Of a stretch of 64,000 nt of DNA, positions 4,936 to 58,972 are shown one piece after another. The stretch's first letter is position 1. Each line of letters begins with the position of its first letter. The translations under genes and the position numbers were made by a program. The notes beneath the pieces are model-generated. The model had not been told where the DNA came from. It worked only from the letters and a program-made list of their open reading frames with translations, and did not search any database. The stretch spans positions 156,238 through 220,237 of the IMG/VR virus record IMGVR_UViG_3300011934_000017. The stretch is one strand, 5' to 3'.

Positions 4936-6090
4936 ATGGCTAGAATACGCAGAGGTACGGGAGGCAAGCTCCGTAAAAATGCAAAGAACTTTACGCACAA
5001 ACAAGCGCAAGCACGTTTGCAAGAAACGGTAGCACCCTTTAACAAACAGGTAGATAACTCGCTACGAGTAAATGCTGTAGAGATTGATTATTACCAGACA
5101 CAAAACAAAATAGGCAGACCATGTACTTGCGACAAGATACAAATATATGATGAACAAAAGACGCGAGACGGTGGCAGCAATTCAAATCATATAGAACCAG
5201 TTGTACCTACCGTAGACGAAGACAGTAGCTCAAGATTAGATATTGAGCTTCAGGACGACAATCTGTTTGGTGATGGGCCTGCTGAAAAGCTGTACGGTGA
5301 AAACGTATATGATGTTAGTGGTTCCGACAATCTGAAAGACGACGATATTCCTGACGAAATATATCGAAACATGTTGGCAGGCGAAGGCGACGTAGCCATG
5401 TCTGAAACCTCCATGTTCGGTTCAAATGCTAACTGTGGAATATGCTATCGTGTAGGTTTCCAGCCGGGGTACAAGTCATACGGCAAACAGCGTACATTGT
5501 TGACCACGTGGGACATTAAAGACATAAGCAGTTATAATGTTGTCACGACCGAGACACCTAATAAGATGCGGCGTCAAGGCCCCAAAACAGACTACACGTT
5601 TGTTGAGTTCACCTTGTTCGTTCCGAAGTATTTCAAGTCTTGTATTTTCAGCATTCGAAACAACACACAGATTCTACAAGGTGAGCGGATTCGAGCGTTT
5701 AACCAACCGCTGACTTTGAAAACGTTGAAAGACAATGCAGGCAAAGAAATTGTGGTTCGAGTGGATGCGTTGGAGTTCACGCATATTGTTGTCGAGTTTG
5801 ATCTAGGTGTTCAAAAGACATATGCCAATCTAGGACCAGAAAGCCAAGCGCTTGACTATTCCAAGATGGATGCGCTTTCAAACTTTCCTTTAGTTCTTCC
5901 TCCTTCTATTCACGAGGTCAATACAGGTGATGTTATAGTCATCAAAGACCGAAAACTGGTACTAAAAATCATAGACCTGGAGAGAAAGATAACAGCAGAT
6001 AAGAGGCAATTAGAATGGACAGTTCAAACTCGACTAATCCAAAAAACAGAACCCTTGAGAGACATTGCGAAGGGCATGAAGATTCTGTAG
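4936..6090 (+). CDS. Putative virion structural protein with CxC...CxxC motif (possibly head closure/neck type)
   Basis: AGGAGA RBS before ATG 4936; PCTC and CGICYRVGFQPGY. The function is inference. Confidence 0.55.
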   Translation: MARIRRGTGGKLRKNAKNFTHKQAQARLQETVAPFNKQVDNSLRVNAVEIDYYQTQNKIGRPCTCDKIQIYDEQKTRDGGSNSNHIEPVVPTVDEDSSSRLDIELQDDNLFGDGPAEKLYGENVYDVSGSDNLKDDDIPDEIYRNMLAGEGDVAMSETSMFGSNANCGICYRVGFQPGYKSYGKQRTLLTTWDIKDISSYNVVTTETPNKMRRQGPKTDYTFVEFTLFVPKYFKSCIFSIRNNTQILQGERIRAFNQPLTLKTLKDNAGKEIVVRVDALEFTHIVVEFDLGVQKTYANLGPESQALDYSKMDALSNFPLVLPPSIHEVNTGDVIVIKDRKLVLKIIDLERKITADKRQLEWTVQTRLIQKTEPLRDIAKGMKIL

Positions 6091-7505
6091 GAAGAAAGAA
6101 TTACATTGTCACCGTAAAAAGAAATGTCGTCAAAGAAGACGTGCTGGATGAATTACAGCGCCCAGAATGCGGATGCGTCCATCGAAGCGTCGAAGTAACC
6201 GACTTCCAATCGTTGAGCAGAAGGAATTTCACAGTAGCTTTGACTGTGGAAGAGCGGGATATCCTGAGAGAAAGCGACAATGTGGTTGATGTTGTTTTGG
6301 AAGAAGGCTTCAATAGAATGAAGCCTGTGCTTGAAGAGCAACTGATTAATCCTGCTTTTGAGAATAGCGCTTCAAGCACCCACGACAACTGGGCTCTGGA
6401 TCATTGTGCGTTTCGAAACGGATACAAGTACATTTACTCGCACACCGGAAAGAACGTAGACATAATCTTCATTGACTCAGGTGTGGACCCTAATCACTCT
6501 GAGTTCGAACAGAACGGTGTATCCAGAGTCCGCGTTATTGAATGGGAAGCTGGACAGTTCAGCACTAAGCCAGATCAATACGTAGACACGGAGGGTCATG
6601 GGACTGGTGTGTCTAGCTGTGGTGTAGGCAAAAGACAAGGCTTCGCAAAAGACAGTGACATATATAGCATAAAGATTTTTGATAATGATGCCTACAGCCC
6701 GTTAAAAGCGTTGCAGCTTGCGCGTACTTGGCACAATCAAAAGACGAACGGTCGTCCTACCATAGTGAACAATAGCTGGGGATATTCAGCGGAGTATCCA
6801 CCTGGGCATCCTAAAGCAGGACAAAAGCATCCTGTTCAAGTAGCTGTGATAGATGCTGAAATCGAATCCATGATAGACGCGGGCATTATAGTAGTAAGCG
6901 CAGCAGGAAATGAAAATCACCACGTAGCCGCAGAAGGCACTGCCGAATACGATGATTTTTACTACACAGACAGCAGCGGTAACTACACCGAAATTATGGA
7001 GGATGCTGCATACTTTGATAGGAACAATCGATACACGCCGGGCGGTTCTGCCGAGACGATATGCGTTGGTTCAATAGGTGAGTTCTATCCTACTTCCAGA
7101 TTCATAAGGTCATGGTTTTCTAATTTTGGAAGTAGGGTAGACATATTTGCTCCAGGACGTGTGATTCAGTGTGCTCAGTCCTTAACAACAAACGATCTAA
7201 AGAAAACCAATGGTACTTCTTTTTCTTCCGGCATTCTGAGCGGTATAATTGCGCTTTGGTTAGAGATAAACCCGACTGCGAATCAAATGGATGTTAGAAA
7301 ATGGCTGAGTAGGCATGCCTTTTCAAGCGAGGTCGTAGGCAGTTTAGAAGGTGCAGAAAATCAAACAGCCAGAGTATTGTTCAACGGTGTCAGAGCAGCT
7401 AAAGACACTCCTCATACAATACTGTTGAAGCAAGGTAATCAATGGTATCCAGTACAACATATAACCAGCAATAAACGAGCCGTATATGGCAGGAGAATTT
7501 CATGA
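6015..7505 (+). CDS. Subtilisin-family (S8) serine protease with I9-like prodomain
   Basis: Triad motifs FIDSGV, EGHGTGV, NGTSFS; oxyanion AAGNE; NNSWG, FSNFGSRVDIFAPG. Start uncertain (76-nt overlap with the upstream gene). Confidence 0.9.
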   Translation: MDSSNSTNPKNRTLERHCEGHEDSVGRKNYIVTVKRNVVKEDVLDELQRPECGCVHRSVEVTDFQSLSRRNFTVALTVEERDILRESDNVVDVVLEEGFNRMKPVLEEQLINPAFENSASSTHDNWALDHCAFRNGYKYIYSHTGKNVDIIFIDSGVDPNHSEFEQNGVSRVRVIEWEAGQFSTKPDQYVDTEGHGTGVSSCGVGKRQGFAKDSDIYSIKIFDNDAYSPLKALQLARTWHNQKTNGRPTIVNNSWGYSAEYPPGHPKAGQKHPVQVAVIDAEIESMIDAGIIVVSAAGNENHHVAAEGTAEYDDFYYTDSSGNYTEIMEDAAYFDRNNRYTPGGSAETICVGSIGEFYPTSRFIRSWFSNFGSRVDIFAPGRVIQCAQSLTTNDLKKTNGTSFSSGILSGIIALWLEINPTANQMDVRKWLSRHAFSSEVVGSLEGAENQTARVLFNGVRAAKDTPHTILLKQGNQWYPVQHITSNKRAVYGRRIS

Positions 7506-9139: not shown

Positions 9140-9172
9140 TTGAACAGATTATATGGAAAACCGGAGATTACG

Positions 9173-10648
9173 ATGGGAAAACAGTTACCCGAAGAGCTAA
9201 GGTATCAGCTTCTTGTTTTCGACTATAAGAAAGCTAACAAGGCACGCAAGCTCTGGAAAAAACGTAAAGGAGATAAGGATAAAGAAGCCCATAAAAAGTT
9301 TTGCTATGGATTAGGAGCAAAGCTAGACGTTTCTCCGAAAGTAGTTAGCTTCATCGTCAAAAACAATAAATGGGCAGATCAAAAGCCCGCAGAGCATGTA
9401 AAATCATTACCAACAGGCCTTCAAGAATACGATAAACCTTCTTTGAAGCCTGAAGCCTTAGTCAGAGGAAGAGAATTATACATATCTCCTAAAAACTGGC
9501 GCAGGCTCAACGAGCATTACACCAAAGGAAAAATAAAGAAAGCTATTGTTCGCGCTGTTAGAAAGCTAGATTTACCTGCACCTGTTCAACCTATAAGCCA
9601 AGAGCAAGCAGATGATAGCTTTCGAGCACTGAAAAAGTTGCGTTCTGACAGCATGATAAAACGTATGCCTACCTGCACACGGTGGGATTATAAATACGGT
9701 ATTTCCGACGTTGTTATTGACGCACCTCGAACAGGAAACGAATGCTCAAACTTTTATCATCAGGAGTCACGTTGGTGGTGCGACTATCAGAGTATTCCGT
9801 CACCGATGAAAGTATGGAATTCTGATCTTCACATGTATTCCATGATGAATGCTTTATGGACGTTGAAGTTTAAGAAGATTACAGGACCAGAGCTTCGCAC
9901 AGCTATAAGTGTCCGTAAATATGTGGCTAGTCAGTTTAAACCTTCTGCCGCCAAAGCGTTTTACGAGCTATTTGACTGCAAGCACGTTTACGATCCTTCC
10001 AGTGGCTGGGGAGACCGTCTAGCAGGCTTCATGGCAGCTAAATGCACCAAGTCCTATTGCTCTACGGATCCCAACAGCAGACTGTACGACGACTATGAAT
10101 TGCAGAAAAATCGGTACGGTGGAAAGAAAGAAATAAACATGTACTGTCACGGTAGTGAAATCAAAGGTGGTGTTCGCAAGATGTACGGACACAGAGTTGA
10201 TACTGTCTTTACTTCGCCTCCTTATTTCAATGCCGAACGCTACAGCGAAGACGAAGGCCAAAGCTTTAGGCAGTTTGATGAAATAAGTGCGTGGCGTGAA
10301 AATTTCCTGTTTCCTTCTTTGAAAAATGCGTGGAATGCTTTGACTTCAGAAGGTGAACGCGGTGGCATTCTAGCAATCAATATTTCGGACATATACAACT
10401 CTTCGGATAAAACTCGCGGTGAGATATGCGACCCTATGAACGATTACATATCTTCGCTGAAAGGTGCTCGATACATCGGTTGTATTGGTTTGCGTCTAGC
10501 TAAACGTCCTGAGAGCGGTGCACTTGAAGGTAAACAAGGTGCAAGTATCGAACCTATCTGGGTCTGGGCTAAAGGTGGCTCTTGGGAGCTAGACGATTAT
10601 ATAGATAACGGATTTAAGACTAAGAAAGTAAAAGGTCTTTGGGGATAA
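9173..10648 (+). CDS. SAM-dependent amino (N4-C/N6-A type) DNA methyltransferase
   Basis: Motif I YDPSSGWGDR and motif IV FTSPPYF; long basic N-terminal extension; GGAG RBS before ATG 9173. Confidence 0.85.
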   Translation: MGKQLPEELRYQLLVFDYKKANKARKLWKKRKGDKDKEAHKKFCYGLGAKLDVSPKVVSFIVKNNKWADQKPAEHVKSLPTGLQEYDKPSLKPEALVRGRELYISPKNWRRLNEHYTKGKIKKAIVRAVRKLDLPAPVQPISQEQADDSFRALKKLRSDSMIKRMPTCTRWDYKYGISDVVIDAPRTGNECSNFYHQESRWWCDYQSIPSPMKVWNSDLHMYSMMNALWTLKFKKITGPELRTAISVRKYVASQFKPSAAKAFYELFDCKHVYDPSSGWGDRLAGFMAAKCTKSYCSTDPNSRLYDDYELQKNRYGGKKEINMYCHGSEIKGGVRKMYGHRVDTVFTSPPYFNAERYSEDEGQSFRQFDEISAWRENFLFPSLKNAWNALTSEGERGGILAINISDIYNSSDKTRGEICDPMNDYISSLKGARYIGCIGLRLAKRPESGALEGKQGASIEPIWVWAKGGSWELDDYIDNGFKTKKVKGLWG

Positions 10649-10649
10649 T

Positions 10650-11360
10650 ATGGCACATATCATTGAAGCAAACAGTATCGACAGTCTTTGGTATCGTACT
10701 ATGAATACCTTACTGACTGAAGGCGATAAGATTAGCGGTATTCAAGAAATTCCTAATCTGATCTTGGTTCTTAAAAAGAATTTTCGATCCTCTGAGTTTT
10801 TCGATAAAGAGTTTCGTCGTATTTTTGGAGACGAACGAATAGACTTTGCATCTTCTGTAACGTTTGTTCCTCCGAAAGAAGGCATGGTAAGTCCTTCATA
10901 CGAACAGAATGAGCCCAAAGCTAAGTGGACGAAAACTTACTGGGGTCGTATGATCAGTTTTGACGGAAGTGTTAATCAGATTGAGGAAGCAATCAAAAAG
11001 CTTTCTAAAGGTAAGAATACCAAGATGATTTCTATAGGTATTTATGCGCCTTCTTCCGATCATCGCAAAGTCATGGGTGGTGTGCCTTGTATGACTGCTA
11101 TCGATATAAAGCCTAGAAATGGAAAGATTGATCTATCTGTTTTCATGAGGTCTATGCGATTCTCTAAGTCGGGTTATGGAGACGTTCATGCCTTGTGTGA
11201 ACTAGGTAAATATATCTGTGAGCGCTCTAACATGGAAATGAACAGCCTCACCATGTTTGCGACCTCTGGACACACTTTTTACTCTGGTGAAGAGTTTACA
11301 AACTGTAAAGCTCTTATGGAATCAATGAAAGAACGCAAAGCAGAGAAGGTAAGAATATGA
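10650..11360 (+). CDS. Atypical thymidylate-synthase-fold protein (dCMP-hydroxymethylase-like Asp)
   Basis: YWGR...NQ, PC147, RS167-168, D178 at the E. coli N177 position, H208; R170 replaces the conserved D169. Confidence 0.8.
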   Translation: MAHIIEANSIDSLWYRTMNTLLTEGDKISGIQEIPNLILVLKKNFRSSEFFDKEFRRIFGDERIDFASSVTFVPPKEGMVSPSYEQNEPKAKWTKTYWGRMISFDGSVNQIEEAIKKLSKGKNTKMISIGIYAPSSDHRKVMGGVPCMTAIDIKPRNGKIDLSVFMRSMRFSKSGYGDVHALCELGKYICERSNMEMNSLTMFATSGHTFYSGEEFTNCKALMESMKERKAEKVRI

Positions 11361-12172
11361 AGCTCAGCCTTAATAATCCAGTTGAAACCCATCGTATTGG
11401 CAAATACGAAGTCTTTGTCAAGCGTGATGATATGATGGGTGATAATAAAATTCTTCCACCTTGGGGAAAGATGGACGCCATTGATAGTATTCTTCAAAGA
11501 ATGGATCTTAGCGTACCTCTTATACAACTGAATGTCTTTGGTTCTTGGAGTGGTTGGGCACTCGCACGTCTCGCTAAAAAGTATGATTGCGAAGTACATG
11601 TGGTTCATCCTAAGACGAAGAAAATCACTGACGACTATATAGGTGTGATGGAAGAAGCAGGTGCTATCATTCATCCTATTCGACATAATATGATGCGCGT
11701 TTTGTACGCTCAGACGAACAACAGGGCGAAAGAAGAAGGTATGAGAATGCTGCCGTATGCATTCAACACACCGAAATATCTAAACGCTATGGCAAGACGT
11801 TTACGCGCTACTTTAGAAGAGCTGGGTCCCATAGATAACTTGGTGGTAAGCTCTGGTAGTGGTGTGACTGTTACGGGACTGTCTAAACCTTTTCTTGATC
11901 TAAATCCTAAAGGTCAAGTCTACACTGTTTGCGTTTCGTCCGAAAATTCGATTCGTAAAACGTTTAACAGTCGTGAAGTCAGCACTGATCCTGTTCACAT
12001 TATCAAGTCACCGTATGAGTTTGGTGATACGATGCCTAAAGTTGAAGTTCCTTTCTCTTGTAATCAGTTTTGGGATAAGAAAGCTTGGCATTGGTTGACG
12101 GAGAACAAGAGCATTCTTAAAGGTAAGCGTACACTGTTCTGGAATCTAGGTGGTGAGTATACATTTTTGTGA
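11357..12172 (+). CDS. PLP-dependent fold-type II enzyme (ACC deaminase/D-cysteine desulfhydrase-like)
   Basis: VKRDD, PPWGK (putative PLP Lys), SSGSGVT phosphate loop, LFWNLGG; ATGA overlap with the upstream gene. Confidence 0.85.
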   Translation: MKLSLNNPVETHRIGKYEVFVKRDDMMGDNKILPPWGKMDAIDSILQRMDLSVPLIQLNVFGSWSGWALARLAKKYDCEVHVVHPKTKKITDDYIGVMEEAGAIIHPIRHNMMRVLYAQTNNRAKEEGMRMLPYAFNTPKYLNAMARRLRATLEELGPIDNLVVSSGSGVTVTGLSKPFLDLNPKGQVYTVCVSSENSIRKTFNSREVSTDPVHIIKSPYEFGDTMPKVEVPFSCNQFWDKKAWHWLTENKSILKGKRTLFWNLGGEYTFL

Positions 12173-12183
12173 GGATTGAATAA

Positions 12184-13026
12184 ATGGGCAAGCCGAAAGT
12201 TAAAGAATGTTTGATACGTAACCTGGAAAGATATGACGGACCTTTTGCTGTTCTTCTGTCGGGTGGTGCAGACAGTCACGCTAATCTTTTCGCATTACTT
12301 GAGATGGGCGCAGACGTACACGTATATAGCTGCACCTTAGAAGACAGGGAAAGCAGGGATTTTATTTGTGCTCGCAGGACTGCTGAAATCTTTGATCTAC
12401 CTTTCACACCTGTTATTTTACCTACAGACCTCGACCAGCTCCTTGTAGATATTCGAGAGAACATGAGTCTTATCGGAACAAAAGGCAAGGTAGAGGTAGA
12501 AGCTTTATGGGCGTTTCGTAAAGCCGTTGATATTATAACAGAACCTAGTATCGTCAGCGGTCTGTCAGCAGGTATGTATTTTTGTTTGACCAAGAAAGGC
12601 AGCATACACTACGCACATACAGGAAGAATCGACGAATATCGTAGAGAGACATTTAAAAGAGCCTCTAATCCTAATAATCAAGGGGCCAAGATGAAACGAT
12701 ATTCGAAAAGCGTTGGAAAGAAGTGGATAAATCCTTGGATAACCCGAGGAATGCTAAAGACGTTCTTAGGAACTACATGGGAAGATGTAAATAAACCACG
12801 ACAAAAAGAAGCGATCCGCGCAGACTTTGAAAAATACTTTGCAAAAACCAAAGTGTTTAATCAACGAGACATGCACAAAGGTGATAGCGGTATGTCTGAG
12901 CTATTCGCTAAATTGTTGGAAGACCCTAAGGTAAATGTTAGGAATCATAAATCTGTTGTTGGTATCTACAATATGATACGAGCAGAAGAGCTGGCCAGAG
13001 TAAATAAAGGCCCTGGCTTGTTCTAG
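12184..13026 (+). CDS. Asparagine-synthetase-like PP-loop amide ligase without glutaminase domain
   Basis: LLSGGADS PP-loop, IVSGLSAGMYF, INPW, KEAIR, KGDSG; 280 aa with no N-terminal Ntn domain. Confidence 0.75.
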   Translation: MGKPKVKECLIRNLERYDGPFAVLLSGGADSHANLFALLEMGADVHVYSCTLEDRESRDFICARRTAEIFDLPFTPVILPTDLDQLLVDIRENMSLIGTKGKVEVEALWAFRKAVDIITEPSIVSGLSAGMYFCLTKKGSIHYAHTGRIDEYRRETFKRASNPNNQGAKMKRYSKSVGKKWINPWITRGMLKTFLGTTWEDVNKPRQKEAIRADFEKYFAKTKVFNQRDMHKGDSGMSELFAKLLEDPKVNVRNHKSVVGIYNMIRAEELARVNKGPGLF

Positions 13027-13038
13027 TCGGAGAATGCA

Positions 13039-13701
13039 ATGCTTACTTTCCAACATTTAGATAAACTCACCATAAACGAATTTTTTGAAAGCGACTTGTT
13101 TTTTGAGTTGCACTCTCTGTCTGGTATGAGCATATTTAGCGGTAGTACGGAAACAGTAAAAGAGAAATTGCTAGATTCTGTACACAACCAACAAGAAAAG
13201 GTTTCACACAACCTCGTATGTTCGAATGGAAAACCTGTTGGTTTCTTTTCTTTGAAGACGCACAGTACCTACTTTTACTACGACACCTTTACAGATACAG
13301 TAGAAGACTTAGGTAATGCGGTAGAGTTTTCTAGTTGGTTTGTTTCTAGTAGCTATAAAAATCTAGTTTCTCCTACCGCCGCTATAATGAGAAAAAGCTT
13401 AGAAATGGCAAGTGACATTGGACGCATTGCTGTGTTTGGTGTGCGAGCACAGTATTACGAAGACGGTACTCCAATGTTTCTTTCTGCGAATAGAGATTGT
13501 TGGAGTCACGAACCGCGACCAGACTACAATATATCTAATGGGCCTAAAAACTTGTCTGTGACGCATCCTTCTTTTCATCCTGATTCTTTTGGTATTTTAA
13601 AAGCTGCTCACCTGTTTGGCTTTAATATGTTTGGTTTAGATGCTTACGACGGGAGTCCTAAATATCGCAAGTTTCTTTCTTCAATGAAATCTGTTGAATG
13701 A
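13039..13701 (+). CDS. Putative GNAT-fold acyltransferase
   Basis: LVCSNGKPVGFFSL strands, EFSSWFVSSSYKN motif-A-like segment, AIMRKSLEMA helix; GGAGA RBS. Confidence 0.5.
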   Translation: MLTFQHLDKLTINEFFESDLFFELHSLSGMSIFSGSTETVKEKLLDSVHNQQEKVSHNLVCSNGKPVGFFSLKTHSTYFYYDTFTDTVEDLGNAVEFSSWFVSSSYKNLVSPTAAIMRKSLEMASDIGRIAVFGVRAQYYEDGTPMFLSANRDCWSHEPRPDYNISNGPKNLSVTHPSFHPDSFGILKAAHLFGFNMFGLDAYDGSPKYRKFLSSMKSVE

Positions 13702-13745: not shown

Positions 13746-14726
13746 ATGTCGATTACCGTAGAAAAAGACGATTATATAATCGTTCGTTACCGCAACAAGT
13801 CCGTTCTTTGTTTTGTGTTGAATGGAAAAAGCTGTAGAGGCGTTATAGAAAAAACGCTTCATACCGATGATCCTGAGAATATCACTTACGAAAGTGAAAA
13901 CGTTCTCTGTAATCTGGGTCCCAACCCACAAAATGGCAAAATCTACGGCATTGATGTTACACCGTATCGAAGCACCATAGATACAAAGACGTTTGGCCCC
14001 ATTCATCTATTCCGTGACGTTCCTAAAAAGGAGCTTAAAGCGCTTCGTTCTGCAATGAAGACGGTGCACAAGAAATTTGAGAAAGAGGCGAGCACTGCCT
14101 TTCTACCTTTGTATCAAATGCACATTCTACCGAAGAAGGGCAAGTATGCAGGGTCATATCTAGCCAAGTCTAAAGGCAGTGAAGTATGGGACCAGATTAA
14201 ACTGCATCCCGACACATTCGTTGATCCTATCTATAACGAATACCTGATTGCCCACGAGTTTGCACACGGCCTCTGGTACCGCTGTGTGCCTATGGATATC
14301 CGAGCTAAGTGGATCAATCTATATCAAAAGCGTCGTAAGCTAAACTCTATTAATCAAAAGCATCTGGACGAGCTTTACCAAGAGCTTATGCGTTATGAAG
14401 GTGGTATTCGTGATTACATCAAAGAAGTAGCCGACGATGAAGAAAAACTGGTAATCAAGGAAGTGTTGAACTACTTCAAGCGTTACCAGAGTATGTCTTC
14501 AGATGATGTGGAGCTCTTGTTGTTACATGATAGTGGCAAGCTTGCTGATATGTGGCCGAGCCGTGCTCTACTATCAGAGACCAGTCCCGACATTTCCACC
14601 TATTCTATGGTCAAGGTAGAAGAATTTTTTGCAGAGGCTGTGGCTTATCATTTTACAGGAAGAACGTTACCTAAAGATGTTCAGAAAGGCATTTCTATCA
14701 CCTTCAAAAAGTGCAAACAAGCTTAA
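13746..14726 (+). CDS. Zincin-like metallopeptidase domain protein
   Basis: IAHEFAHGLW (HExxH) and distal EEFFAEAVA. Confidence 0.65.
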   Translation: MSITVEKDDYIIVRYRNKSVLCFVLNGKSCRGVIEKTLHTDDPENITYESENVLCNLGPNPQNGKIYGIDVTPYRSTIDTKTFGPIHLFRDVPKKELKALRSAMKTVHKKFEKEASTAFLPLYQMHILPKKGKYAGSYLAKSKGSEVWDQIKLHPDTFVDPIYNEYLIAHEFAHGLWYRCVPMDIRAKWINLYQKRRKLNSINQKHLDELYQELMRYEGGIRDYIKEVADDEEKLVIKEVLNYFKRYQSMSSDDVELLLLHDSGKLADMWPSRALLSETSPDISTYSMVKVEEFFAEAVAYHFTGRTLPKDVQKGISITFKKCKQA

Positions 14727-14733
14727 TTCTAGC

Positions 14734-14760
14734 AGGGAAGCTTTTTAGCTTCCCTTTTTT
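14734..14760 (+). terminator. Rho-independent terminator closing the 9173-14726 operon
   Basis: AGGGAAGCT-TTTT-AGCTTCCCT-TTTTT. Confidence 0.85.
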
Positions 14761-34129: not shown

Positions 34130-37100
34130 ATGACACTTTCTTTTGAAGACGGACTCAAGCAACTGCATAAAATCTTGCAGGAAAGCAATAGTAGTTCCGA
34201 AGATCAAGATGATCAAAACCCCGATACTTTGCCTGTGAATTATGGACTGGCGTACCCTTTTTCTTCTTTGTCTGCCAGTAAAGATGATTCCGATTCTATT
34301 ATCTCGCAACAGCTAACCTCTGTTCGCCTCGATAAGGATCGAGCCGCAGAGTACAATAAAACCTTTTATCCTAAAGGCTCTGAAGCTTTTCAACCTATTA
34401 TCGAAGAGCTTGTTAAGGTTTCTGCTCAAGTTAACGGCATGTTTTCGCTGTTGCGCTATTGCCTTGCGTCCTCTCGTCGGCTGTCTTTGATGGGCCCTAT
34501 GGAACGCGCTGATGCAATCAACCGCGAAGCCGAACGTATTTTACGCAATGTTTCTGGAGGCGACCGCTCTGAAATCATTGACAACTTCCTTAGCTCAACC
34601 AACTCCGGTAAGAATCACGTAATCAAACCCTCTACTCGCTATGAAGGTGGTTACGATATTCGATTTATTGGTTCTCCTGCTTCTCCAAGTTCTTCTGTAG
34701 AAGCTAGTCTTCCTTCTATCCATGTTCCTTACGGCGAAAACTCCGTAATTGATATTGCACCAGGCGGAAAAAGCAATAGCCCTCATTATCAGCGTGAATA
34801 TTTAGAAGCCTATGCTACCGAGTTTGCTCAGAATGCTGTGGCAGCGGGTGAAGAAATTCTGCAAATGTTGGTAGGCGAGAAAGCGTCTGATTACGGAAGT
34901 GCGGCTCAACGACTGGTTCGCACAGTACCTTTTGACTTTGATTTTCGTTCCGCTAACGAGATTTTCTTCAAGCATACTGGTATTGTTCTTACCGTAGATA
35001 TGATGGAAGATATTGATAAGAGTATCGTTCAGAAATACGGAGAGTTCTTTAGCGCTTGTGTTATTCGGACACCAAAAAGCTCCTTGATCAATCTTGTTTA
35101 CCGTAAGATGGAAAAAGACCGGGCTGAAGCTCAAGAGGGTGCTGAAGCTCCGCCTGTATCTGCTTCATATATTGAAGACTATGTTACAAAAGAAGGCATG
35201 GCGCTTTCTCAAGTAGTTTCTCTGTCTTTTGCTATTACGCTTCCAGCCGACATTACTCGGTACATCACTCAAACAGAAACCAGTGAGCGTGTACCTATCG
35301 CATCGCTGCATAACTGGGCATCTATCTGGACTCGCGTCTTCATTCGTAAGAAAGGCGCGAAAATGTCTGGTGGACGTATTCGTAACCGCGAAATTCCTCG
35401 TTTCGTTCCGCCTCTGTCGAAGACTCAGAATATTACGAATCTACGTGCTCAAAATGGTTTTCACGTAGAGCCTGGTAAGGGCGATGACAACGGAATTTTT
35501 ATTGCACCTGACGGTACGTTGCAGTACGGTCTTCCTACAGAAGCAAAAGCGGACATTAACGAAAACCTAATCAATTACGAGCGTGACCTAGATACATATC
35601 TCGCTTTTTGTTTTGATCATGATATTCCGCCTCAGAGCACTATGGCTTTGCCTAATGAGGTTCAAGTAGGCTCTGCTGATCCAAACGTTAATGAACAATA
35701 CAAGAAGCTCTTTAATAATGTCCGTAAGTATAGTGGTAAGCTGTTGTCCTATGATTGGGACTACAACAATATCATCACAGCACATGTTACGGACCCTACG
35801 AGCATTGTACCTCGCGATCTGGTAGGTGCAGCTAAAGTCGATAGTTTGGCTATTGCGGATTACTTGGGTTACAACTTCGCAGACGAAGGCGAAAGTCCGA
35901 TTCGTAAAGGCTTTGCAGACGCAATGGTCTTGATGACACAGCCAAACTCGGAAGATTCCGACATTGCTCTTTCTCGTGTGTCATCCAGTTCGAATCCTGC
36001 TGCCTTCATGGAGCCTGGAGGTGTATCGCCTTCTCTGTTGGAGTTCTATGCCTTTCAAATGATGAAAGAGCGTGTACCTGACGGTGAAAAGCTGTTTGAA
36101 ATGGCGAAAAGCGAGCTTGGTATCACCGAGCTATCCGAATATGACCAGTATATCTATCCCAATCTGTTTCTTAACGGATATCCCGATCCTGACGGCTCAA
36201 TTAGAAGTTCGCGCGGGACTGTAAACTTTCTGCTGTCGTGCGTAAGCCACACGATGCGCCATTGTAATCGTGGTCCTATTTTACGTCAGATGGTCGCTAA
36301 TGAGAACCCTGGTATCTCCCCAGGTGACTTGGCTGAAGAGGTAGAGAATCATCCTCACTTCTTCAATCCGTCTTCTTCTCCCGCTGCTGACTTTGGGCGT
36401 CTGTACAACTACATCGGTGGTATGATTTTCCGTATCGCTATGGAAAGTCTGACCAAAGTTGCACGAAAAGACCTATTCAGCGTAGAAGAGCCGATTCCTG
36501 TAGGCGGGTACGGCAATGCGCTGTTGCACAAGTCCAACCATAGCCAGGTATCTCGTACTATATTGCCTCTTGCTATCATGTTTTCGAAGTATATTCCGAA
36601 TAAAGATTTATACTTCCGTGAGGCCGAAGAGCTGGTTGAGTCGAACAAAGGTGATCCTTCTGTTGACGAATCGGATATTCAAATAGCAGGTTCTGTAGAC
36701 GGTGCGCAGATGTTCCCGCACCAGGTACGTGCTCACGGTAGCCTACGTAAGCGTCCTGCTTTCTCAATTCTTGACATTGCTCCAGGTGGCGGTAAGACTA
36801 CTCTAGGTGTTACTGACATTGCATCTATGGTCACGGAGTTAAATGAACTCGGTCAAGACAAAATCAAGCCCATCATCTTATGCCCAGACGGTCTCATTAA
36901 GAACTGGGTAGACGATATGAAGATTTTCACAGGCAACAACTGGAACATGCTTCCTGTGAACAGTACGATTTTGTCACGTTGGGGATACGAAAAGCTTGAA
37001 GAGACTATTCGAAATGCTCCGCCTAATACCATAGTAGTTTGTGGCTTCCAGTTCCTTAACAACAAGAAAGAAACTATTGTTGTGGGAACACACTCAGTTA

Positions 37101-40100
37101 ATATCTCCAATAACCTGGAGTTTATGAAACGTTTCGGCTTCGATTATATCTGTATTGATGAATCGCACAAGCTGAAAAAGAAAAGCTCGCAGCGCCACAA
37201 AAACATTAAGCAGTTTACCACAGGTTCACACGTTCGCTTCTTGCGTCTGGCCACAGGTACTTTGATTAGTGACCGTGTCAGCGATATTGTAGGGCAAGCA
37301 AGTCTCTATAATGGACACATTTTCCGTGACGGTGAAGTATCAAGAACAGCCGTCTCTGATGTGTCTCCCAGCGTGAGTGTTAACGGCGATGAAGTCCCGT
37401 TGTGGCAAGTAGATAGCCCTCAACGTGCTCGCCAGAAGCTTGGTCGTTATGCGTCTGTTATCACAATGAAGAAAAAGGAATGGGCATTCATGCTGCCCAG
37501 TCCTATTGAAACCTTCATTGCAGTACCTATGGTACCGGATAACGAAGGTGCTACCGCCGCTGAGCGTGAAGCCGTTGAGCTGGGTGAAATGCACAAGCAG
37601 CTTTATGATGCTGTACTTCAGGAGTCTGTCGAAGAGCTGGAAGAGCTTTTAAAGAAAGCCAAAGGTCGAGGTGCAGGCGAAGGTGATGACGACGAGGAAG
37701 AAGAAGCAGATAGCGATGGTTCGCCTGAAGGTGCTGATGTTGATCTGGACGATGCGGATGATTTAGCGGCACTAGGCGCTACCGCCCTTCATCCTTATCT
37801 GGCACGTATCGAGCGTTTGGTCACTAACCCTATGGCAGACCCGCTTGCTCCTCAAATCTTCGGTGCTGCGGGTGTTGAACACTACCATAGTACCAAAGCG
37901 CTTTACGTTGCTAAGCGAATCGACGACCACTTCAATCCTACGAAGTGGGAGAAAGACAAAATCTACAAGGAATACACACTTGTAGATTTTGAAGGTCGTT
38001 TATTCTTGAGTCGCAAGAAAGACAAGGGTTCTCCTACTCCAACAGTTCTTCCAGAGACTACTCGCGGTGTTACGCCTCTGGACGATACAGATACTTGGAA
38101 AGAAGAGCCGGAAGGTAAGATCGTTATTTTCTGTCGCTATACTAACAGCGTAAACGGTATTTATAACGCTTTGCCTTCTGAGTACAAGAAAATCGCTGTT
38201 AAGTTTACTGGTCAAGAACAAGACAAGTGGGCAAATCTTGATGGTTTCATGAACGATCCTAAAATCAAGATTCTGGTCGCTAACGAAATGGGTATTGCGG
38301 AAGGCCATAACATGCAGTTGGCTTCTCGTATTATTCGTATCGAGAGTCCTTGGGCGCCGGGTGATCTTGACCAAGCATCTTCACGTATCTTCCGTCCTGA
38401 TCCGAAAGCTCAGAAAGACATGGTTAAATCAGGTAAGCCTGGCGAGCTTGCGCGTGAAGCTATCTTCCTTGACTGGATTCTTTGCGATAACACAATGGAG
38501 GTTGCTAAGCAGGCACGTTTGATTTCCAAGATTTTCAACAAGGCACGTTTTGACGAAGCCGAAAACGCGACCTACGATGACGTGTTGAATGAGTACGACC
38601 TTGATGAAATTCGAATGAGTCTGGACACGCTTCGGTCTCGTGCGTCTCTGAGTGAATATACCGATTACGTTGAAGCTTATGCTGCGCTTAACGGTATTCA
38701 GCGTGAAGAGTTCCACGAAATGCGGGCTACCATGGATCACACCATGAAGAGCCTTGAAGTTACTCCGCCTACTCCTGGTTTTGCCAAGATTCAAACTCCT
38801 TTTGTTGCGAATCAAAAGCCCGACGATAGCGAGGGTCTAAATCTTGTTACGCTTCGGAACATGTTGCGCAGCGACGAGTACAGGAAGTTTAAAGATGATC
38901 CTTCTTTATTGAAAGGCATGCCCATTGTAACAGATATGGGTAAAGGACGCATCGCTTCTGTTCGAGTTCGCTACTTAAATCAAACAGTGTTGGATGAAGA
39001 AGGTAATCCTGTTCGTAACAAGCCTACTAGGGCTAATCCTTTAGGTACAATCAAGAAAGAACCTGTTCTTGACTCTCAAGGCCGCAAAGTTATCGACCCT
39101 GACAAGCCTATTAGTAGTATGAAAGTGAAGCTTTCTGGCTCGAATGATGTTATTGATATTAAGGGAACTGGCGATGTGTTTATGCCTACCACTCTTGATT
39201 CGAAAACAGCTAAGAAAGACTTCAAGGTTAACAATCTGAATACTACAGCGACACAGGAGCGTAAAACAGCCCGAGAAGAGGAGCGCATTCGCCAAGAGGA
39301 AGAGGAAGAGCGTAAGCAGAAGGAGAAAGAGGAAGAGAAAGCATTGCTCAGAGAAGAGCGACGTCGGAAGAGGGAAGCACAGCAAGCCAAAGAACGTGCT
39401 GCCGCTGCTGAAGACGGTAAGAAGCGTGAAGAAAACATCAAAGACGGCAAGCCAATCAACACAGGTATTCGCCCGAAGGACAATGTTCCTCCGATTAAGC
39501 GTGGTCGCATTCAAGACGAAGATGGTGACAAGGTAGTTACCGTATCTCCTGCTTACTTCCACGGCTATCTAACGCTCGAAATGGACAGCGACGATACTGA
39601 TCCTAAACTAGCCAAGAAGCTTGGGTTCAAGACTTCAGGACCCTATGCTTACGTTACTGCGGATCGTTACAATCGTTTCGATAAGGTTCTGGATTACCTC
39701 GAAAGTAACTTCTATCTATCGGATGCAAGTGCTCGCCGCTTGGAAGAAGTTCAAGATGCTTTCGATACAGGTCCGAAAGAAATCTATCGTATGGAGCTGC
39801 TGCCAAACACTTCTCTTCCGATGTTCTTCGCTGTTAGCAAGCGCAAGGTCACCAAGCGTAATGAGATTCGTCCATACCCAATCATTATGCCGGATGCTTT
39901 GCATATTGCTGTTGATAAGCTGACAAGTCCTGCCATTGTTAAGCACATCAATAAAGCGATTCCGGGTGCCGTGACCAAATGGAAAGAGCATCCTGGACAC
40001 TACCTGTTCTTTGCAACAACGAAAGCAGAACTTCGCAACAAAATTCGTGAACTGAAAAAGGCAGGACTCACTATAGCAAATGAGGCCGAAGCTAAAGCGG

Positions 40101-40144
40101 AAATCACCAACATCAAATTCCGTGCTGCTAAAGGCAAGAAGTAA
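34130..40144 (+). CDS. Giant (2004 aa) SNF2/SWI2-family ATPase-domain protein
   Basis: MFPHQ, APGGGKTT, IDESH, LATGT, VIFCRY, EGHNMQ, ESPWAPGDLDQASSRIFR; AGGAG RBS. Confidence 0.85.
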   Translation: MTLSFEDGLKQLHKILQESNSSSEDQDDQNPDTLPVNYGLAYPFSSLSASKDDSDSIISQQLTSVRLDKDRAAEYNKTFYPKGSEAFQPIIEELVKVSAQVNGMFSLLRYCLASSRRLSLMGPMERADAINREAERILRNVSGGDRSEIIDNFLSSTNSGKNHVIKPSTRYEGGYDIRFIGSPASPSSSVEASLPSIHVPYGENSVIDIAPGGKSNSPHYQREYLEAYATEFAQNAVAAGEEILQMLVGEKASDYGSAAQRLVRTVPFDFDFRSANEIFFKHTGIVLTVDMMEDIDKSIVQKYGEFFSACVIRTPKSSLINLVYRKMEKDRAEAQEGAEAPPVSASYIEDYVTKEGMALSQVVSLSFAITLPADITRYITQTETSERVPIASLHNWASIWTRVFIRKKGAKMSGGRIRNREIPRFVPPLSKTQNITNLRAQNGFHVEPGKGDDNGIFIAPDGTLQYGLPTEAKADINENLINYERDLDTYLAFCFDHDIPPQSTMALPNEVQVGSADPNVNEQYKKLFNNVRKYSGKLLSYDWDYNNIITAHVTDPTSIVPRDLVGAAKVDSLAIADYLGYNFADEGESPIRKGFADAMVLMTQPNSEDSDIALSRVSSSSNPAAFMEPGGVSPSLLEFYAFQMMKERVPDGEKLFEMAKSELGITELSEYDQYIYPNLFLNGYPDPDGSIRSSRGTVNFLLSCVSHTMRHCNRGPILRQMVANENPGISPGDLAEEVENHPHFFNPSSSPAADFGRLYNYIGGMIFRIAMESLTKVARKDLFSVEEPIPVGGYGNALLHKSNHSQVSRTILPLAIMFSKYIPNKDLYFREAEELVESNKGDPSVDESDIQIAGSVDGAQMFPHQVRAHGSLRKRPAFSILDIAPGGGKTTLGVTDIASMVTELNELGQDKIKPIILCPDGLIKNWVDDMKIFTGNNWNMLPVNSTILSRWGYEKLEETIRNAPPNTIVVCGFQFLNNKKETIVVGTHSVNISNNLEFMKRFGFDYICIDESHKLKKKSSQRHKNIKQFTTGSHVRFLRLATGTLISDRVSDIVGQASLYNGHIFRDGEVSRTAVSDVSPSVSVNGDEVPLWQVDSPQRARQKLGRYASVITMKKKEWAFMLPSPIETFIAVPMVPDNEGATAAEREAVELGEMHKQLYDAVLQESVEELEELLKKAKGRGAGEGDDDEEEEADSDGSPEGADVDLDDADDLAALGATALHPYLARIERLVTNPMADPLAPQIFGAAGVEHYHSTKALYVAKRIDDHFNPTKWEKDKIYKEYTLVDFEGRLFLSRKKDKGSPTPTVLPETTRGVTPLDDTDTWKEEPEGKIVIFCRYTNSVNGIYNALPSEYKKIAVKFTGQEQDKWANLDGFMNDPKIKILVANEMGIAEGHNMQLASRIIRIESPWAPGDLDQASSRIFRPDPKAQKDMVKSGKPGELAREAIFLDWILCDNTMEVAKQARLISKIFNKARFDEAENATYDDVLNEYDLDEIRMSLDTLRSRASLSEYTDYVEAYAALNGIQREEFHEMRATMDHTMKSLEVTPPTPGFAKIQTPFVANQKPDDSEGLNLVTLRNMLRSDEYRKFKDDPSLLKGMPIVTDMGKGRIASVRVRYLNQTVLDEEGNPVRNKPTRANPLGTIKKEPVLDSQGRKVIDPDKPISSMKVKLSGSNDVIDIKGTGDVFMPTTLDSKTAKKDFKVNNLNTTATQERKTAREEERIRQEEEEERKQKEKEEEKALLREERRRKREAQQAKERAAAAEDGKKREENIKDGKPINTGIRPKDNVPPIKRGRIQDEDGDKVVTVSPAYFHGYLTLEMDSDDTDPKLAKKLGFKTSGPYAYVTADRYNRFDKVLDYLESNFYLSDASARRLEEVQDAFDTGPKEIYRMELLPNTSLPMFFAVSKRKVTKRNEIRPYPIIMPDALHIAVDKLTSPAIVKHINKAIPGAVTKWKEHPGHYLFFATTKAELRNKIRELKKAGLTIANEAEAKAEITNIKFRAAKGKK

Positions 40145-47900: not shown

Positions 47901-47928
47901 CTTTTCTTCCGTTAAACGTGTCGCTTAG
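44926..47928 (+). CDS. polA: Family A DNA polymerase with N-terminal UDG-like domain and 3'-5' exonuclease
   Basis: Exo motifs IDTET, NATFD, YCSLD; Pol motifs TGR, DYSAHEVR, RNAVKTVIFGLIY, VHDS; N-terminal ILIVLD...LLSGATG...PDVVLTFG resembling UDG family 4; TGTAAATA at 44883-44890. Confidence 0.92.
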   Translation: MGKPKHVSLPYKYSPSYRDVQNDFGYVQLAKHQTKKTDKKILIVLDYVPTEDLASGRLLSGATGSLLKRIDQVTSQYYGSKYKINDHNWLAVTFHTFKTIGQSDAFREGAKKEFKNRLQHIILKYKPDVVLTFGPDPYKALNASKISKYNGKMQHLFGVPIPTKIKSKNKEHKFKHVPSLSLNTLVNDQGKGSEMALTGYVARNLLTAVEGDLRYRIPKRPEYSTVLVDTVEKFDKMLKLMARSKYVAIDTETENLNRRANKMLTLQFAASTKRAFVLPFLHKDSPFTAKELQYIRKKLRKYFESKNNNTYQIYANATFDLTVLRNALDIRFFKASIWDLFAAEFALDENMKFLSGVTGHYYYSLLNLSMQYGCTAYYEAEFGKENRKTISTADLNDALLEYCSLDVVIPLHIMREQMQRAVDIGYDKFESVVAEQISDMLHTFSTLEYNGAYTDIDYLFYLMTKDSPIHGEILKIMDRLKETKGVKKANQLLSKSKGVPTVGLWGKSDVDMFNISKQDHQRLLFFDVLKLKPIQVGKAGHGKIDKTFQAKYSDVEEVKLYTELQKAKKLFNAYVKSFIKNWGVDEDMRFDRRIRPHFKFLDVVTGRTSAQKPSLHQIPSRSELGKHIKRLFITEEGRIMIKVDYSAHEVRCWSLFTGDKDVAGLFDNGRQLRSDFKLAPDADLLKRVELEGDVHKINASYFFGVPIDQVDKKTRNAVKTVIFGLIYQQGIKGLAKSTGQTIEAMEKLTKEFKKKYPVGVSWFDDIKQFAREHLYVESPLGRRRHVWGLLIPDDAKNADSCIARNERQSVNSPIQGMGSDFLINGSRQIERLKYDHFEASGHYPDFYQANSVHDSIIFSCAKEDLWLAIRIIEEGLTSAVSDVSKKRHDMDFVVPLEIDFEIGSNERDVEGWDYSIESLERIMRGTLKTQKEWGHNVDVEKDLHSSVFGHYEDMPEWAQKQAWNYKLKLRGMKKDPRSKKEKRLAVPEHSDSFSSVKRVA

Positions 47929-58957: not shown

Positions 58958-58972
58958 TTGAGGAGCCCTGCT

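Follow-up and report, generated by a model that had tools for sequence, protein, structure and literature searches.

The window, a 64,000-nucleotide stretch of IMG/VR virus record IMGVR_UViG_3300011934_000017, comes from a complete 220,237-bp jumbo-phage genome and contains a 4.6-kb cassette of five genes (9140-13701, + strand). The features of the cassette are as follows.

9140..10648 (+): SPPY-motif amino-methyltransferase-like protein (502 aa as the longest ORF; the database form starts 11 codons later, 491 aa), with an approximately 100-aa N-terminal extension and a C-terminal WxLxDYIxxGF tail
10650..11360 (+): small (236 aa) thymidylate-synthase-superfamily (TS-like) protein, predicted to be cytosine-directed
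11357..12172 (+): fold-type II PLP enzyme of the M6 gp52 / ViI gp226 family, overlapping the TS-like gene by 4 nt
12171..12175 (+): Shine-Dalgarno sequence GAGGA of the ligase gene, overlapping the PLP stop codon (12170-12172)
12184..13026 (+): glutaminase-less AsnB-type protein of the CmoY clade (280 aa), predicted to be an ATP-dependent amide ligase
12259..12276 (+): PP-loop SGGADS (residues 26-31 of the ligase), the ATP pyrophosphate-binding motif
12880..12891 (+): GDSG loop (residues 233-236 of the ligase), invariant in the family
13039..13701 (+): divergent GNAT-fold acyltransferase (220 aa), 12 nt downstream of the ligase
14734..14755 (+): first clean intrinsic-terminator-like hairpin with a T run on the + strand downstream of the cassette, after the peptidase gene 13746-14726

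The genes form a tight operon, with a 4-nt overlap, gaps of 11-12 nt and a Shine-Dalgarno sequence over the upstream stop codon. No + strand terminator was found before 14734 apart from one weak hairpin match inside the ligase ORF (12502-12524).

We first ascertained whether the ligase is a stand-alone asparagine-synthetase-like domain with no glutaminase and no QueC zinc motif, as a sequence-only reading had proposed. This is confirmed. The ORF has an ATG start with the GAGGA sequence 8 nt upstream, and residues 24-31 read LLSGGADS. Pfam Asn_synthase matches residues 16-77 only (E 3.2e-5, above the curated cut-off). The N terminus reads MGKPK, so there is no Cys2 Ntn nucleophile, 280 aa leaves no room for a glutaminase domain, and there is no GATase_6 or GATase_7 hit. 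QueC is rejected, with PF06508 scoring 18.8 against a cut-off of 22 bits and TIGR00364 scoring 15.8 against 150; the only cysteines (C9, C50, C62 and C134) form no CxxC cluster. Megablast of the region against the phage collection found no match, and single-sequence searches for related loci and against PDB chains (phmmer) found nothing. The family match is far beyond chance: phrog_26038 gives E 5e-53, tblastn finds 58 phage records and there are 54 homolog clusters with E down to 1e-114.

The predicted structure of the ligase (mean pLDDT 95.4) best matches beta-lactam synthetase (1mc1), AsnB (1ct9), human ASNS (6gq3) and carbapenam synthetase CarA (1q19), at TMq 0.67-0.73, against below 0.4 for the non-ligase PP-loop enzymes TtuA, LarE and NadE. 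The family profile likewise hits ASNS, CarA (over nearly the full length), beta-lactam synthetase and AsnB. Hence the outcome that would have spoken against the sequence-only reading, a best match to a non-ligase PP-loop family, was not observed. S26, G28 and S31 of the PP-loop are invariant and D30 is conserved in at least 90% of 45 homologs. Core residues are intact (S26, G28, D30, S31, S57, D59, K102, E106, G126, N203, P205, Q207, K208, G233, D234, S235 and N263).

We next placed the protein among its homologs. A tblastn hit in Synechococcus phage S-B43 (147831-148544) lies within cmoY (147774-148589), at 27.5% identity over 86% of the length (E 7e-18). SpCmoY ligates glycine to 5-carboxymethylcytosine (5cxmC) in DNA in an ATP-dependent reaction (PMC12783734). 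The target is nested inside the short-ligase clade that contains SpCmoY (support 100), separated from long AsnB-type ligases, and is sister to a ligase from a CmoX/CmoA locus (L015; ligase loci are numbered with L) at 48.5% identity (support 96-97). However, SpCmoY is the only member of this clade for which there is biochemistry, and it is only about 27% identical. Several residues that are near-invariant in ligases of CmoA/CmoX loci (type I) are changed in the sub-lineage of the window (F50C, C107A, P110A, D130G, H227Q, N229D and Q231H). Here the motif preceding the GDSG loop, HTNxQ(L/F/Y), becomes QRDMHK, with Met230 at the position that changes convergently. The substrates of the protein may therefore differ more than the tree suggests. 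Since the AsnB, beta-lactam synthetase and CarA relatives all act on small molecules, and no DNA-binding feature was demonstrated, the protein could instead be a small-molecule amide synthetase, for example an auxiliary ammonia-dependent asparagine-synthetase-like enzyme or one making a cofactor or precursor for its neighbours. We consider this unlikely, because members of the CmoY clade are almost always flanked by DNA-modifying enzymes, and the gene sits in the replication-gene region in an operon with a DNA-methyltransferase-like gene and a gp52-like PLP gene.

The enzymes known to make the carboxyl group for CmoY are absent. TIGR00740 (CmoA, the Cx-SAM synthase) and PF00145 (C5-methyltransferase, C5MT; CmoX) give no hit in the complete genome, and phage-specific CmoA and C5MT HMMs give none among its ORFs, an absence that the sequence-only reading could not have known. 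Instead, the SPPY, TS-like and PLP genes occur with the ligase in the window and in L009, L010/L011, L012, L017, L019 and L021, seven genomes in total (IIa loci), and never with CmoA or C5MT. Conversely, about 68 other ligase loci have CmoA and/or C5MT and never TS-like or PLP. About 45 further viral contigs carry a sister cassette (IIb/IIc) with a full-length AsnB, in which the glutaminase domain is intact and, in IIc, TS-like is replaced by a 2-hydroxyacid dehydrogenase. L027 shares flanking backbone genes with the window (68%, 44% and 33% identity) but carries C5MT-CmoA-ligase in the same slot.

The IIa ligases fall at three separate places inside the CmoY tree. A single origin is rejected (delta lnL 198, p-AU 1e-4), although the group tested was defined only after the first tree had been seen. 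L019 and PaBG are 60% identical, and L017 and L027 are 55.5% identical. Such swapping raises the possibility that the ligase is a relic left behind when CmoA/CmoX were replaced, and has no substrate. This is very unlikely, since all family-invariant catalytic residues are retained and the gene is kept in seven genomes at 33-66% pairwise identity to the target, always in the same cassette, an arrangement that arose at least three times independently. Moreover, the gene has a strong Shine-Dalgarno sequence and is translationally coupled to the upstream gene.

The SPPY protein gives only a weak Pfam N6_N4_Mtase match at the SPPY region. It has 885 homologs, many carrying PF01555, Atlas structural matches to N6_N4/N4-cytosine MTase clusters (TM 0.70-0.88), and invariant motifs I (D274..G278-W-G-D-R282) and IV (S348-P-P-Y351). 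Its profile against PDB gave only weak amino-MTase matches, which say nothing about the group transferred. It is present in all seven IIa loci and in nearly all IIb/IIc loci. However, the family is very large and mostly stand-alone, and it occurs alone in the same slot in L018, so it may be an ordinary backbone methyltransferase.

An SPPY motif means alkylation of an exocyclic amine, which allows for the chemistry to be that of the CmoA/X/Y system: the SPPY enzyme would install a carboxymethyl group from host-made Cx-SAM on N4 of cytosine or N6 of adenine, and the ligase would amidate it. In favour, the ligase is close to type I ligases (48-60% identity between sister pairs), many bacteria have their own CmoA, and N4 lies next to C5 in the major groove, so we infer that a CmoY-type pocket could adapt. 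We nonetheless regard this as improbable. Phages that use Cx-SAM almost always bring their own CmoA (about 68 of about 70 type I loci), the phage enzyme is reported to be more active than that of the host, and the same study found no N6/N4 carboxymethyltransferase candidates (PMC12783734). The model also gives no role to TS-like or to the strictly co-occurring PLP enzyme, because N-carboxymethyl is a secondary amine that cannot form a PLP aldimine.

The TS-like protein matches TIGR03283 (E 2.6e-21). The best solved relative of its profile is the CMP 5-hydroxymethylase MilA (E 3.6e-6), with the catalytic Cys147 aligned. D178 is invariant (15/15) at the base-discriminating Asn/Asp position, and R170 is invariant where TS and MilA have the pterin-binding Asp. 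The genome has a separate genuine dUMP thymidylate synthase, while ThyX and DHFR are absent. The PLP enzyme matches Pfam PALP (5.8e-11) and phrog_7093 (3e-25) and aligns over its full length with MP1412 gp11; K38 matches K36 of M6 gp52, and the C-terminal PFxCNxFWDxKAWxWL motif is shared. Its model (pLDDT 88.6) has its best TM, 0.72, to the ACC-deaminase homolog 1j0a. This confirms fold type II but cannot tell a decarboxylase from a deaminase, a racemase or a beta-replacement enzyme. Prediction of a TS-like-PLP complex gave no answer (median ipSAE 0.14; runs 0.01/0.54/0.14) and is not evidence for or against binding. The 220-aa protein following the ligase gave no Pfam, PHROG or tblastn hit. 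However, blastp gives 1e-12 to 1e-13 against the Pfam-positive GNAT that follows the ligase in L010/L021 and against the 217-aa protein beside the ligase in L015, and the Atlas gives GNAT/AstA clusters (feature score 0.95, TM 0.6-0.7), identifying it as a divergent GNAT.

M6 gp52 and ViI gp226 decarboxylate amino acids already attached to DNA (PMC8989533). The alternative offered by the sequence-only reading, that the ligase uses an amine made by the PLP enzyme, is neither supported nor excluded. Decarboxylation of DNA-borne amino acids also fits a ligase of reversed polarity, which would adenylate a free acid, such as the side chain of Asp or Glu or an alpha-carboxyl, and transfer it to an amine already on the DNA, installed by the SPPY enzyme or left by PLP decarboxylation; the PLP enzyme and GNAT would then trim and cap the appended amino acid. 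AsnB adenylates free aspartate, gp52-type enzymes require a free alpha-amine, as in an amino acid attached through its side chain, a GNAT follows the ligase, and L019 adds an R2K ATP-grasp peptide-type ligase. Against this, the only characterised clade member adenylates the DNA carboxylate, and sister ligases at 55-60% identity serve 5cxmC-making cassettes, so polarity would have had to switch three times. In addition, the intact glutaminase domain of the IIb/IIc AsnB implies that ammonia attacks a carboxylate. Reversed polarity is therefore unlikely.

We conclude with reasonable, though not high, confidence that the gene encodes a CmoY-family ATP-dependent amide ligase, which probably adenylates a carboxylate on a modified base of the phage's own DNA, most likely a cytosine derivative, allowing an amine to displace AMP and form an amide. 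That the substrate is DNA-borne is inferred, as are the direction of ligation and the order of steps, and cannot be shown by sequence. The main inference of the sequence-only reading, amide formation on a carboxylated base, is supported, being what the only characterised family member does. Simple amidation is less likely for this glutaminase-less clade, because SpCmoY uses glycine and a GNAT follows the ligase here; the amine is more likely an amino acid or diamine than ammonia, and the GNAT then probably acylates a remaining free amine. Since the genome lacks CmoA and CmoX, we infer that the carboxyl handle is made by the SPPY, TS-like and PLP trio, by a route not involving Cx-SAM. None of the three has a precedent for making a carboxylate, however, and the nearest characterised relatives of the PLP enzyme are decarboxylases, which would destroy an alpha-carboxyl handle rather than create one. 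As a gp52-type enzyme needs a primary alpha-amine on its DNA-borne substrate, we favour an amino-acid-type side chain carrying both an alpha-amino and an alpha-carboxyl group. It could be installed by transfer of the 3-amino-3-carboxypropyl group of SAM to an exocyclic amine by the SPPY enzyme, or by TS-like C5 chemistry together with the PLP enzyme. Neither route explains the replacement of TS-like in IIc cassettes.

More tentatively, the cassette and its roughly 45 sister cassettes may encode a previously undescribed, Cx-SAM-independent DNA hypermodification pathway, in which such a side chain is installed on cytosine by a DNA-methyltransferase-fold enzyme, or by a thymidylate-synthase-fold enzyme that has lost its pterin-binding Asp working with a TrpB-fold PLP enzyme, then amidated by the CmoY-type ligase and N-acylated by the GNAT to give a new peptide-like base. 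CmoY was described only in December 2025 and only in the CmoA/CmoX context, whereas this locus shows its lineage repeatedly coupled to a completely different set of upstream enzymes. Literature searches for this second architecture found nothing, and none is among the 50,697 deposited phage records searched, although it is widespread in uncultured phages. If the cassette makes a new carboxyl- and amine-bearing base, it would add a third kind of handle chemistry beside hydroxymethyl and carboxymethyl. It could also reveal a new activity for a DNA-methyltransferase or thymidylate-synthase fold, and would supply enzymes for site-directed DNA functionalisation and explain resistance of these jumbo phages to restriction.

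Among known systems, the M6 gp52 / ViI gp226 decarboxylases of thymidine hypermodification share with the PLP enzyme the fold-type II family, Schiff-base lysine, C-terminal motif and best template (1j0a), at only about 25% identity. M6 and ViI use a 5-hmdU kinase and an amino-acid:DNA transferase upstream; no such genes are visible in this cassette, although they were not searched for genome-wide. MilA (5b6d) shares with the TS-like protein the catalytic Cys and the Asp at the base-discriminating position, which implies a cytosine substrate, but the TS-like protein is much smaller (236 aa against about 325), the partner-subunit Arg-Arg phosphate clamp is reduced to Thr-Lys in a weak alignment, and the pterin-binding Asp is replaced by Arg. 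The synthetase domains of AsnB and human ASNS have the fold of the ligase (TMq about 0.70), a PP-loop and ATP to AMP + PPi chemistry through an acyl-adenylate, but the ligase lacks their N-terminal Ntn glutaminase domain, shares only 15-18% identity and is not expected to use free aspartate. Beta-lactam synthetase and CarA, the best structural matches (TMq up to 0.73), show that the fold accepts bulky carboxylates and non-ammonia nitrogen nucleophiles. They keep a vestigial N-terminal domain, only the C-terminal domains align (TMt about 0.41-0.44, targets of about 500 aa), and they close a ring intramolecularly on a small molecule. SpCmoY of S-B43 (A0A514ABJ0; Yang et al., Nat Commun 2025, PMC12783734) is also a phage-encoded, glutaminase-less AsnB-type PP-loop domain of about 270-280 aa among DNA-modification genes, with a proposed mechanism of acyl-adenylate formation followed by amine attack. 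It is flanked by CmoA and CmoX and acts on 5cxmC with glycine, whereas the ligase described here is flanked by SPPY-MTase-like, TS-like, PLP and GNAT genes and is altered before the GDSG loop (N229D, Q231H, Met230).

We first confirmed that the ligase gene is real. Window 12184-13026 (+) is a 280-aa ORF with a GAGGA Shine-Dalgarno 8 nt before the ATG, overlapping the stop codon of the upstream gene. Residues 24-31 read LLSGGADS. Pfam gives Asn_synthase for residues 16-77 (E 3.2e-5, above the cut-off) and QueC below its cut-off, and PHROGs gives phrog_26038 at 5e-53. There is no Cys2 and no room for a glutaminase domain, and the four cysteines (C9, C50, C62 and C134) form no zinc cluster. The sequence-only reading, of a stand-alone asparagine-synthetase-like domain with no glutaminase and no QueC zinc motif, is thus confirmed.

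We next modelled the protein to establish its fold. An alignment of 45 homologs gave a model with mean pLDDT 95.4, which was compared with the PDB using Foldseek. The closest matches were beta-lactam synthetase 1mc1 (TMq 0.73, E 6e-9), AsnB 1ct9 (TMq 0.71), human ASNS 6gq3 (TMq 0.70) and carbapenam synthetase 1q19 (TMq 0.69), whereas non-ligase PP-loop enzymes (TtuA, NcsA, LarE, NAD/NMN synthetase and MesJ) scored below 0.4. The sequence profile gave the same order, with CarA aligned over residues 23-268. The possibility that the best match would be a non-ligase PP-loop family, which would have contradicted the sequence-only reading, is therefore not borne out.

A tblastn search of 50,697 phage records found 58 records at 24-40% identity, including the Erwinia jumbo phages, PaBG, Yersinia fHe-Yen9-02, Staphylococcus vB-SscS-F1, Salmonella Sen-NF and Synechococcus S-B05, S-B43 and RB11-B. 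In these phages the homolog lies beside a CmoA-like methyltransferase and often a C5 DNA methyltransferase. The cultured phages Erwinia pEa_SNUABM_5, Yersinia fHe-Yen9-02 and Erwinia Y3 have CmoA and the ligase but no C5-methyltransferase within about 6 kb. Sen-NF has a ligase, 77% identical to that of Y3, with an adjacent 'oxygenase' and no CmoA nearby; Y3 has the same oxygenase (63% identity). These may be further variants of the handle chemistry. The trio was characterised in S-B43, where CmoA makes carboxy-SAM, CmoX makes 5-carboxymethylcytosine (5cxmC) in DNA and CmoY, the AsnS-like protein, ligates glycine to it in a reaction that requires ATP, the enzyme and glycine (PMC12783734). The source data of that study place cmoY at 147774-148589, which contains our S-B43 hit. 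The window's ligase is therefore a homolog of a biochemically characterised DNA amide ligase, at 27.5% identity and E 7e-18.

The genomic context is nevertheless different. The window belongs to a complete 220,237-bp IMG/VR phage genome with direct terminal repeats, that of a jumbo myovirus-like phage related to PaBG, with which the clamp loader and SbcC are syntenic. Consistent with a jumbo myovirus, the rest of the window encodes a 2004-aa helicase-family protein (phrog_21391; 34130-40144), a 1000-aa DNA polymerase (44926-47928), a tail sheath protein (56581-58212) and a 1506-aa tail protein with an N-terminal HNH-like segment (58958-63478). The genome contains no C5-methyltransferase (PF00145) and no CmoA (TIGR00740), and our own phage-derived HMMs for both also found nothing. 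Instead, the ligase is the fourth gene of a tight operon:

9140-10648, amino-methyltransferase-like protein with motif I DPSSGWGDR and motif IV SPPYF (the SPPY protein, or SPPY-MT)
10650-11360, 236-aa thymidylate-synthase-superfamily protein (TS-like)
11357-12172, PLP enzyme
12184-13026 (+), the ligase
13039-13701, 220-aa protein

The 220-aa protein has no Pfam or PHROG hit. It is nevertheless homologous to the GNAT acetyltransferases that follow the ligase in loci L010/L021 and to the 217-aa protein beside the ligase in locus L015, and it matches GNAT/AstA folds in the Atlas. A peptidase at 13746-14726 (phrog_17197), 42% identical to PaBG's Zn-metalloprotease-annotated gp182, closes the operon before the terminator-like hairpin at 14734-14755, and a subtilisin/mycosin-like serine protease lies upstream at 6015-7505. 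Both look like backbone genes.

We then examined the partners of the ligase. The best solved relative of the TS-like protein is the CMP 5-hydroxymethylase MilA (E 3.6e-6), with which the catalytic Cys aligns. Asp178 is invariant at the position where dUMP enzymes have Asn, and Arg170 is invariant (in 'RSMR'/'RSNR') where both thymidylate synthase ('RSxD') and MilA ('RAND') have the pterin-binding Asp. In a weak alignment to 1tis, the TS-like protein also has Thr-Lys where thymidylate synthase has the Arg-Arg phosphate clamp. This suggests an unusual co-substrate, or a substrate that is not a 5'-monophosphate. The genome separately encodes a normal dUMP thymidylate synthase (PPCH, RSAD, PFNIS) outside the window (C1:95230-96369 of the complete genome; L013:1498-2637). 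This 379-aa protein carries an insertion of about 55-60 aa (roughly residues 206-261) between the catalytic-Cys segment and the RSAD segment. The genome also has a dCMP deaminase (C1:34969-35325) but no DHFR and no ThyX. The cassette's TS-like protein is therefore not needed to make dTMP.

The PLP enzyme aligns end to end with MP1412 gp11, the ortholog of M6 gp52. Lys38 matches the predicted Schiff-base Lys36, and the C-terminal PFxCNxFWDxKAWxWL motif is shared. Its model (pLDDT 88.6) is fold type II, with its best TM-score to 1j0a, which was also the template reported for ViI gp226; M6 gp52 and ViI gp226 decarboxylate amino acids already attached to thymine in DNA (PMC8989533). The SPPY protein belongs to a very large viral family of N6/N4-type methyltransferase homologs. 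Motif I of the whole family reads G-W-G-D-R, with the Asp-Arg invariant directly after the GxG, which is unusual for amino-methyltransferases, where Thr or a hydrophobic residue is usual.

To determine how widespread this arrangement is, we built HMMs for CmoA, the C5-methyltransferase (C5MT), SPPY-MT, TS-like, PLP and the ligase, and classified 71 IMG/VR ligase loci plus the assembly and phage loci. About 68 loci carry CmoA and/or C5MT beside the ligase (type I). Seven genomes carry SPPY-MT, TS-like, PLP and ligase (type IIa), these being the window, L009, L010/L011, L012, L017, L019 and L021. No locus mixes the two sets. L019 has an extra R2K-type ATP-grasp ligase (Pfam R2K_3/R2K_2; L019:8824-9597) between the PLP enzyme and the AsnS-like ligase, which hints at a second amide or peptide bond in that phage's modification, and L017 has an Exo_endo_phos protein after the ligase instead of a GNAT. 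L027, a jumbo-phage locus (1424-11793) on a 224,853-bp IMG/VR contig, shares the window's flanking backbone genes (68%, 44% and 33% identity) but has C5MT-CmoA-ligase in the same slot. This is direct evidence that the cassette has been exchanged in place. L018 (6001-9577) has the same backbone as L019, but its slot holds only the SPPY-MTase followed by an 85-aa and a 673-aa protein of unknown function (faint YunG match), and may be a third kind of cassette.

Searching from the PLP side found 47 further viral contigs, with sister cassettes in about 45 viral contigs. In many, SPPY-MT, TS-like and PLP accompany a full-length AsnB with GATase_7 and Asn_synthase domains (type IIb; for example, L094:3540-7819). 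In others, a D-2-hydroxyacid dehydrogenase takes the place of TS-like alongside SPPY-MTase, PLP and full-length AsnB (type IIc; for example, L100:5536-10085 and L129:4625-7840); TS-like and the dehydrogenase appear to be alternatives. Many of these loci carry two SPPY-family paralogs, and none has CmoA or C5MT. No deposited phage record among those searched carries a close homolog of the window's PLP or TS-like protein.

In a tree of 106 ligase domains, the long AsnB-type ligases form a distant clade (support 100, branch length 2.5), and the type IIa ligases sit inside the CmoY clade at three separate places. The window group is sister to L015, a type I locus (support 96); L017 groups with L027 and L055 (support 99); and L019 is sister to PaBG (support 99). 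A 47-taxon tree gives the same result. The AU test rejects a single IIa clade (delta lnL 198, p 1e-4), although the group was defined after the first tree had been seen. Sister pairs across contexts are 48-60% identical, and all family-invariant residues are retained in the window's ligase. Residue 230, next to the invariant GDSG loop, is Met or Ala in IIa but Leu, Phe or Tyr in type I, sisters included. The window's sub-lineage also changes Phe50, Cys107, Pro110, Asp130, His227, Asn229 and Gln231. We read this as the same reaction class with a handle or amine that differs somewhat from 5cxmC plus glycine.

We infer that the enzyme adenylates a carboxylate on a modified DNA base and couples it to an amine, that the GNAT then acylates a remaining amine, and that the upstream trio makes the handle. 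A gp52-type PLP enzyme needs a primary alpha-amine, so the simplest handle that serves both the PLP enzyme and the ligase is an amino-acid-type side chain. Two routes to it are possible, between which we cannot choose. In the first, the SPPY enzyme transfers the 3-amino-3-carboxypropyl group of SAM to an exocyclic amine, a logic that would parallel nicotianamine synthase and CntL, spermidine synthase, and the diphthamide pathway with its PP-loop amidase Dph6. This route is favoured by the SPPY and PLP genes being the near-universal members of types IIa, IIb and IIc, but SPPY occurs alone in L018 and in hundreds of other phages. In the second, the TS-like enzyme activates cytosine C5, by the same Cys-to-C6 chemistry that CmoX uses, and the PLP enzyme supplies a three-carbon amino-acid unit, giving the cytosine analogue of M6's C-alpha-glycinyl-thymine. 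The Asp/Arg signature of TS-like and its 4-nt overlap with the PLP gene favour this route, whereas type IIc lacks TS-like and the complex prediction gave no verdict.

The gene is a member of the CmoY protein family but not of a CmoA/X/Y system. It differs from the characterised trio in the enzymes that accompany the ligase, and marks an uncharacterised and apparently widespread phage DNA-modification cassette.
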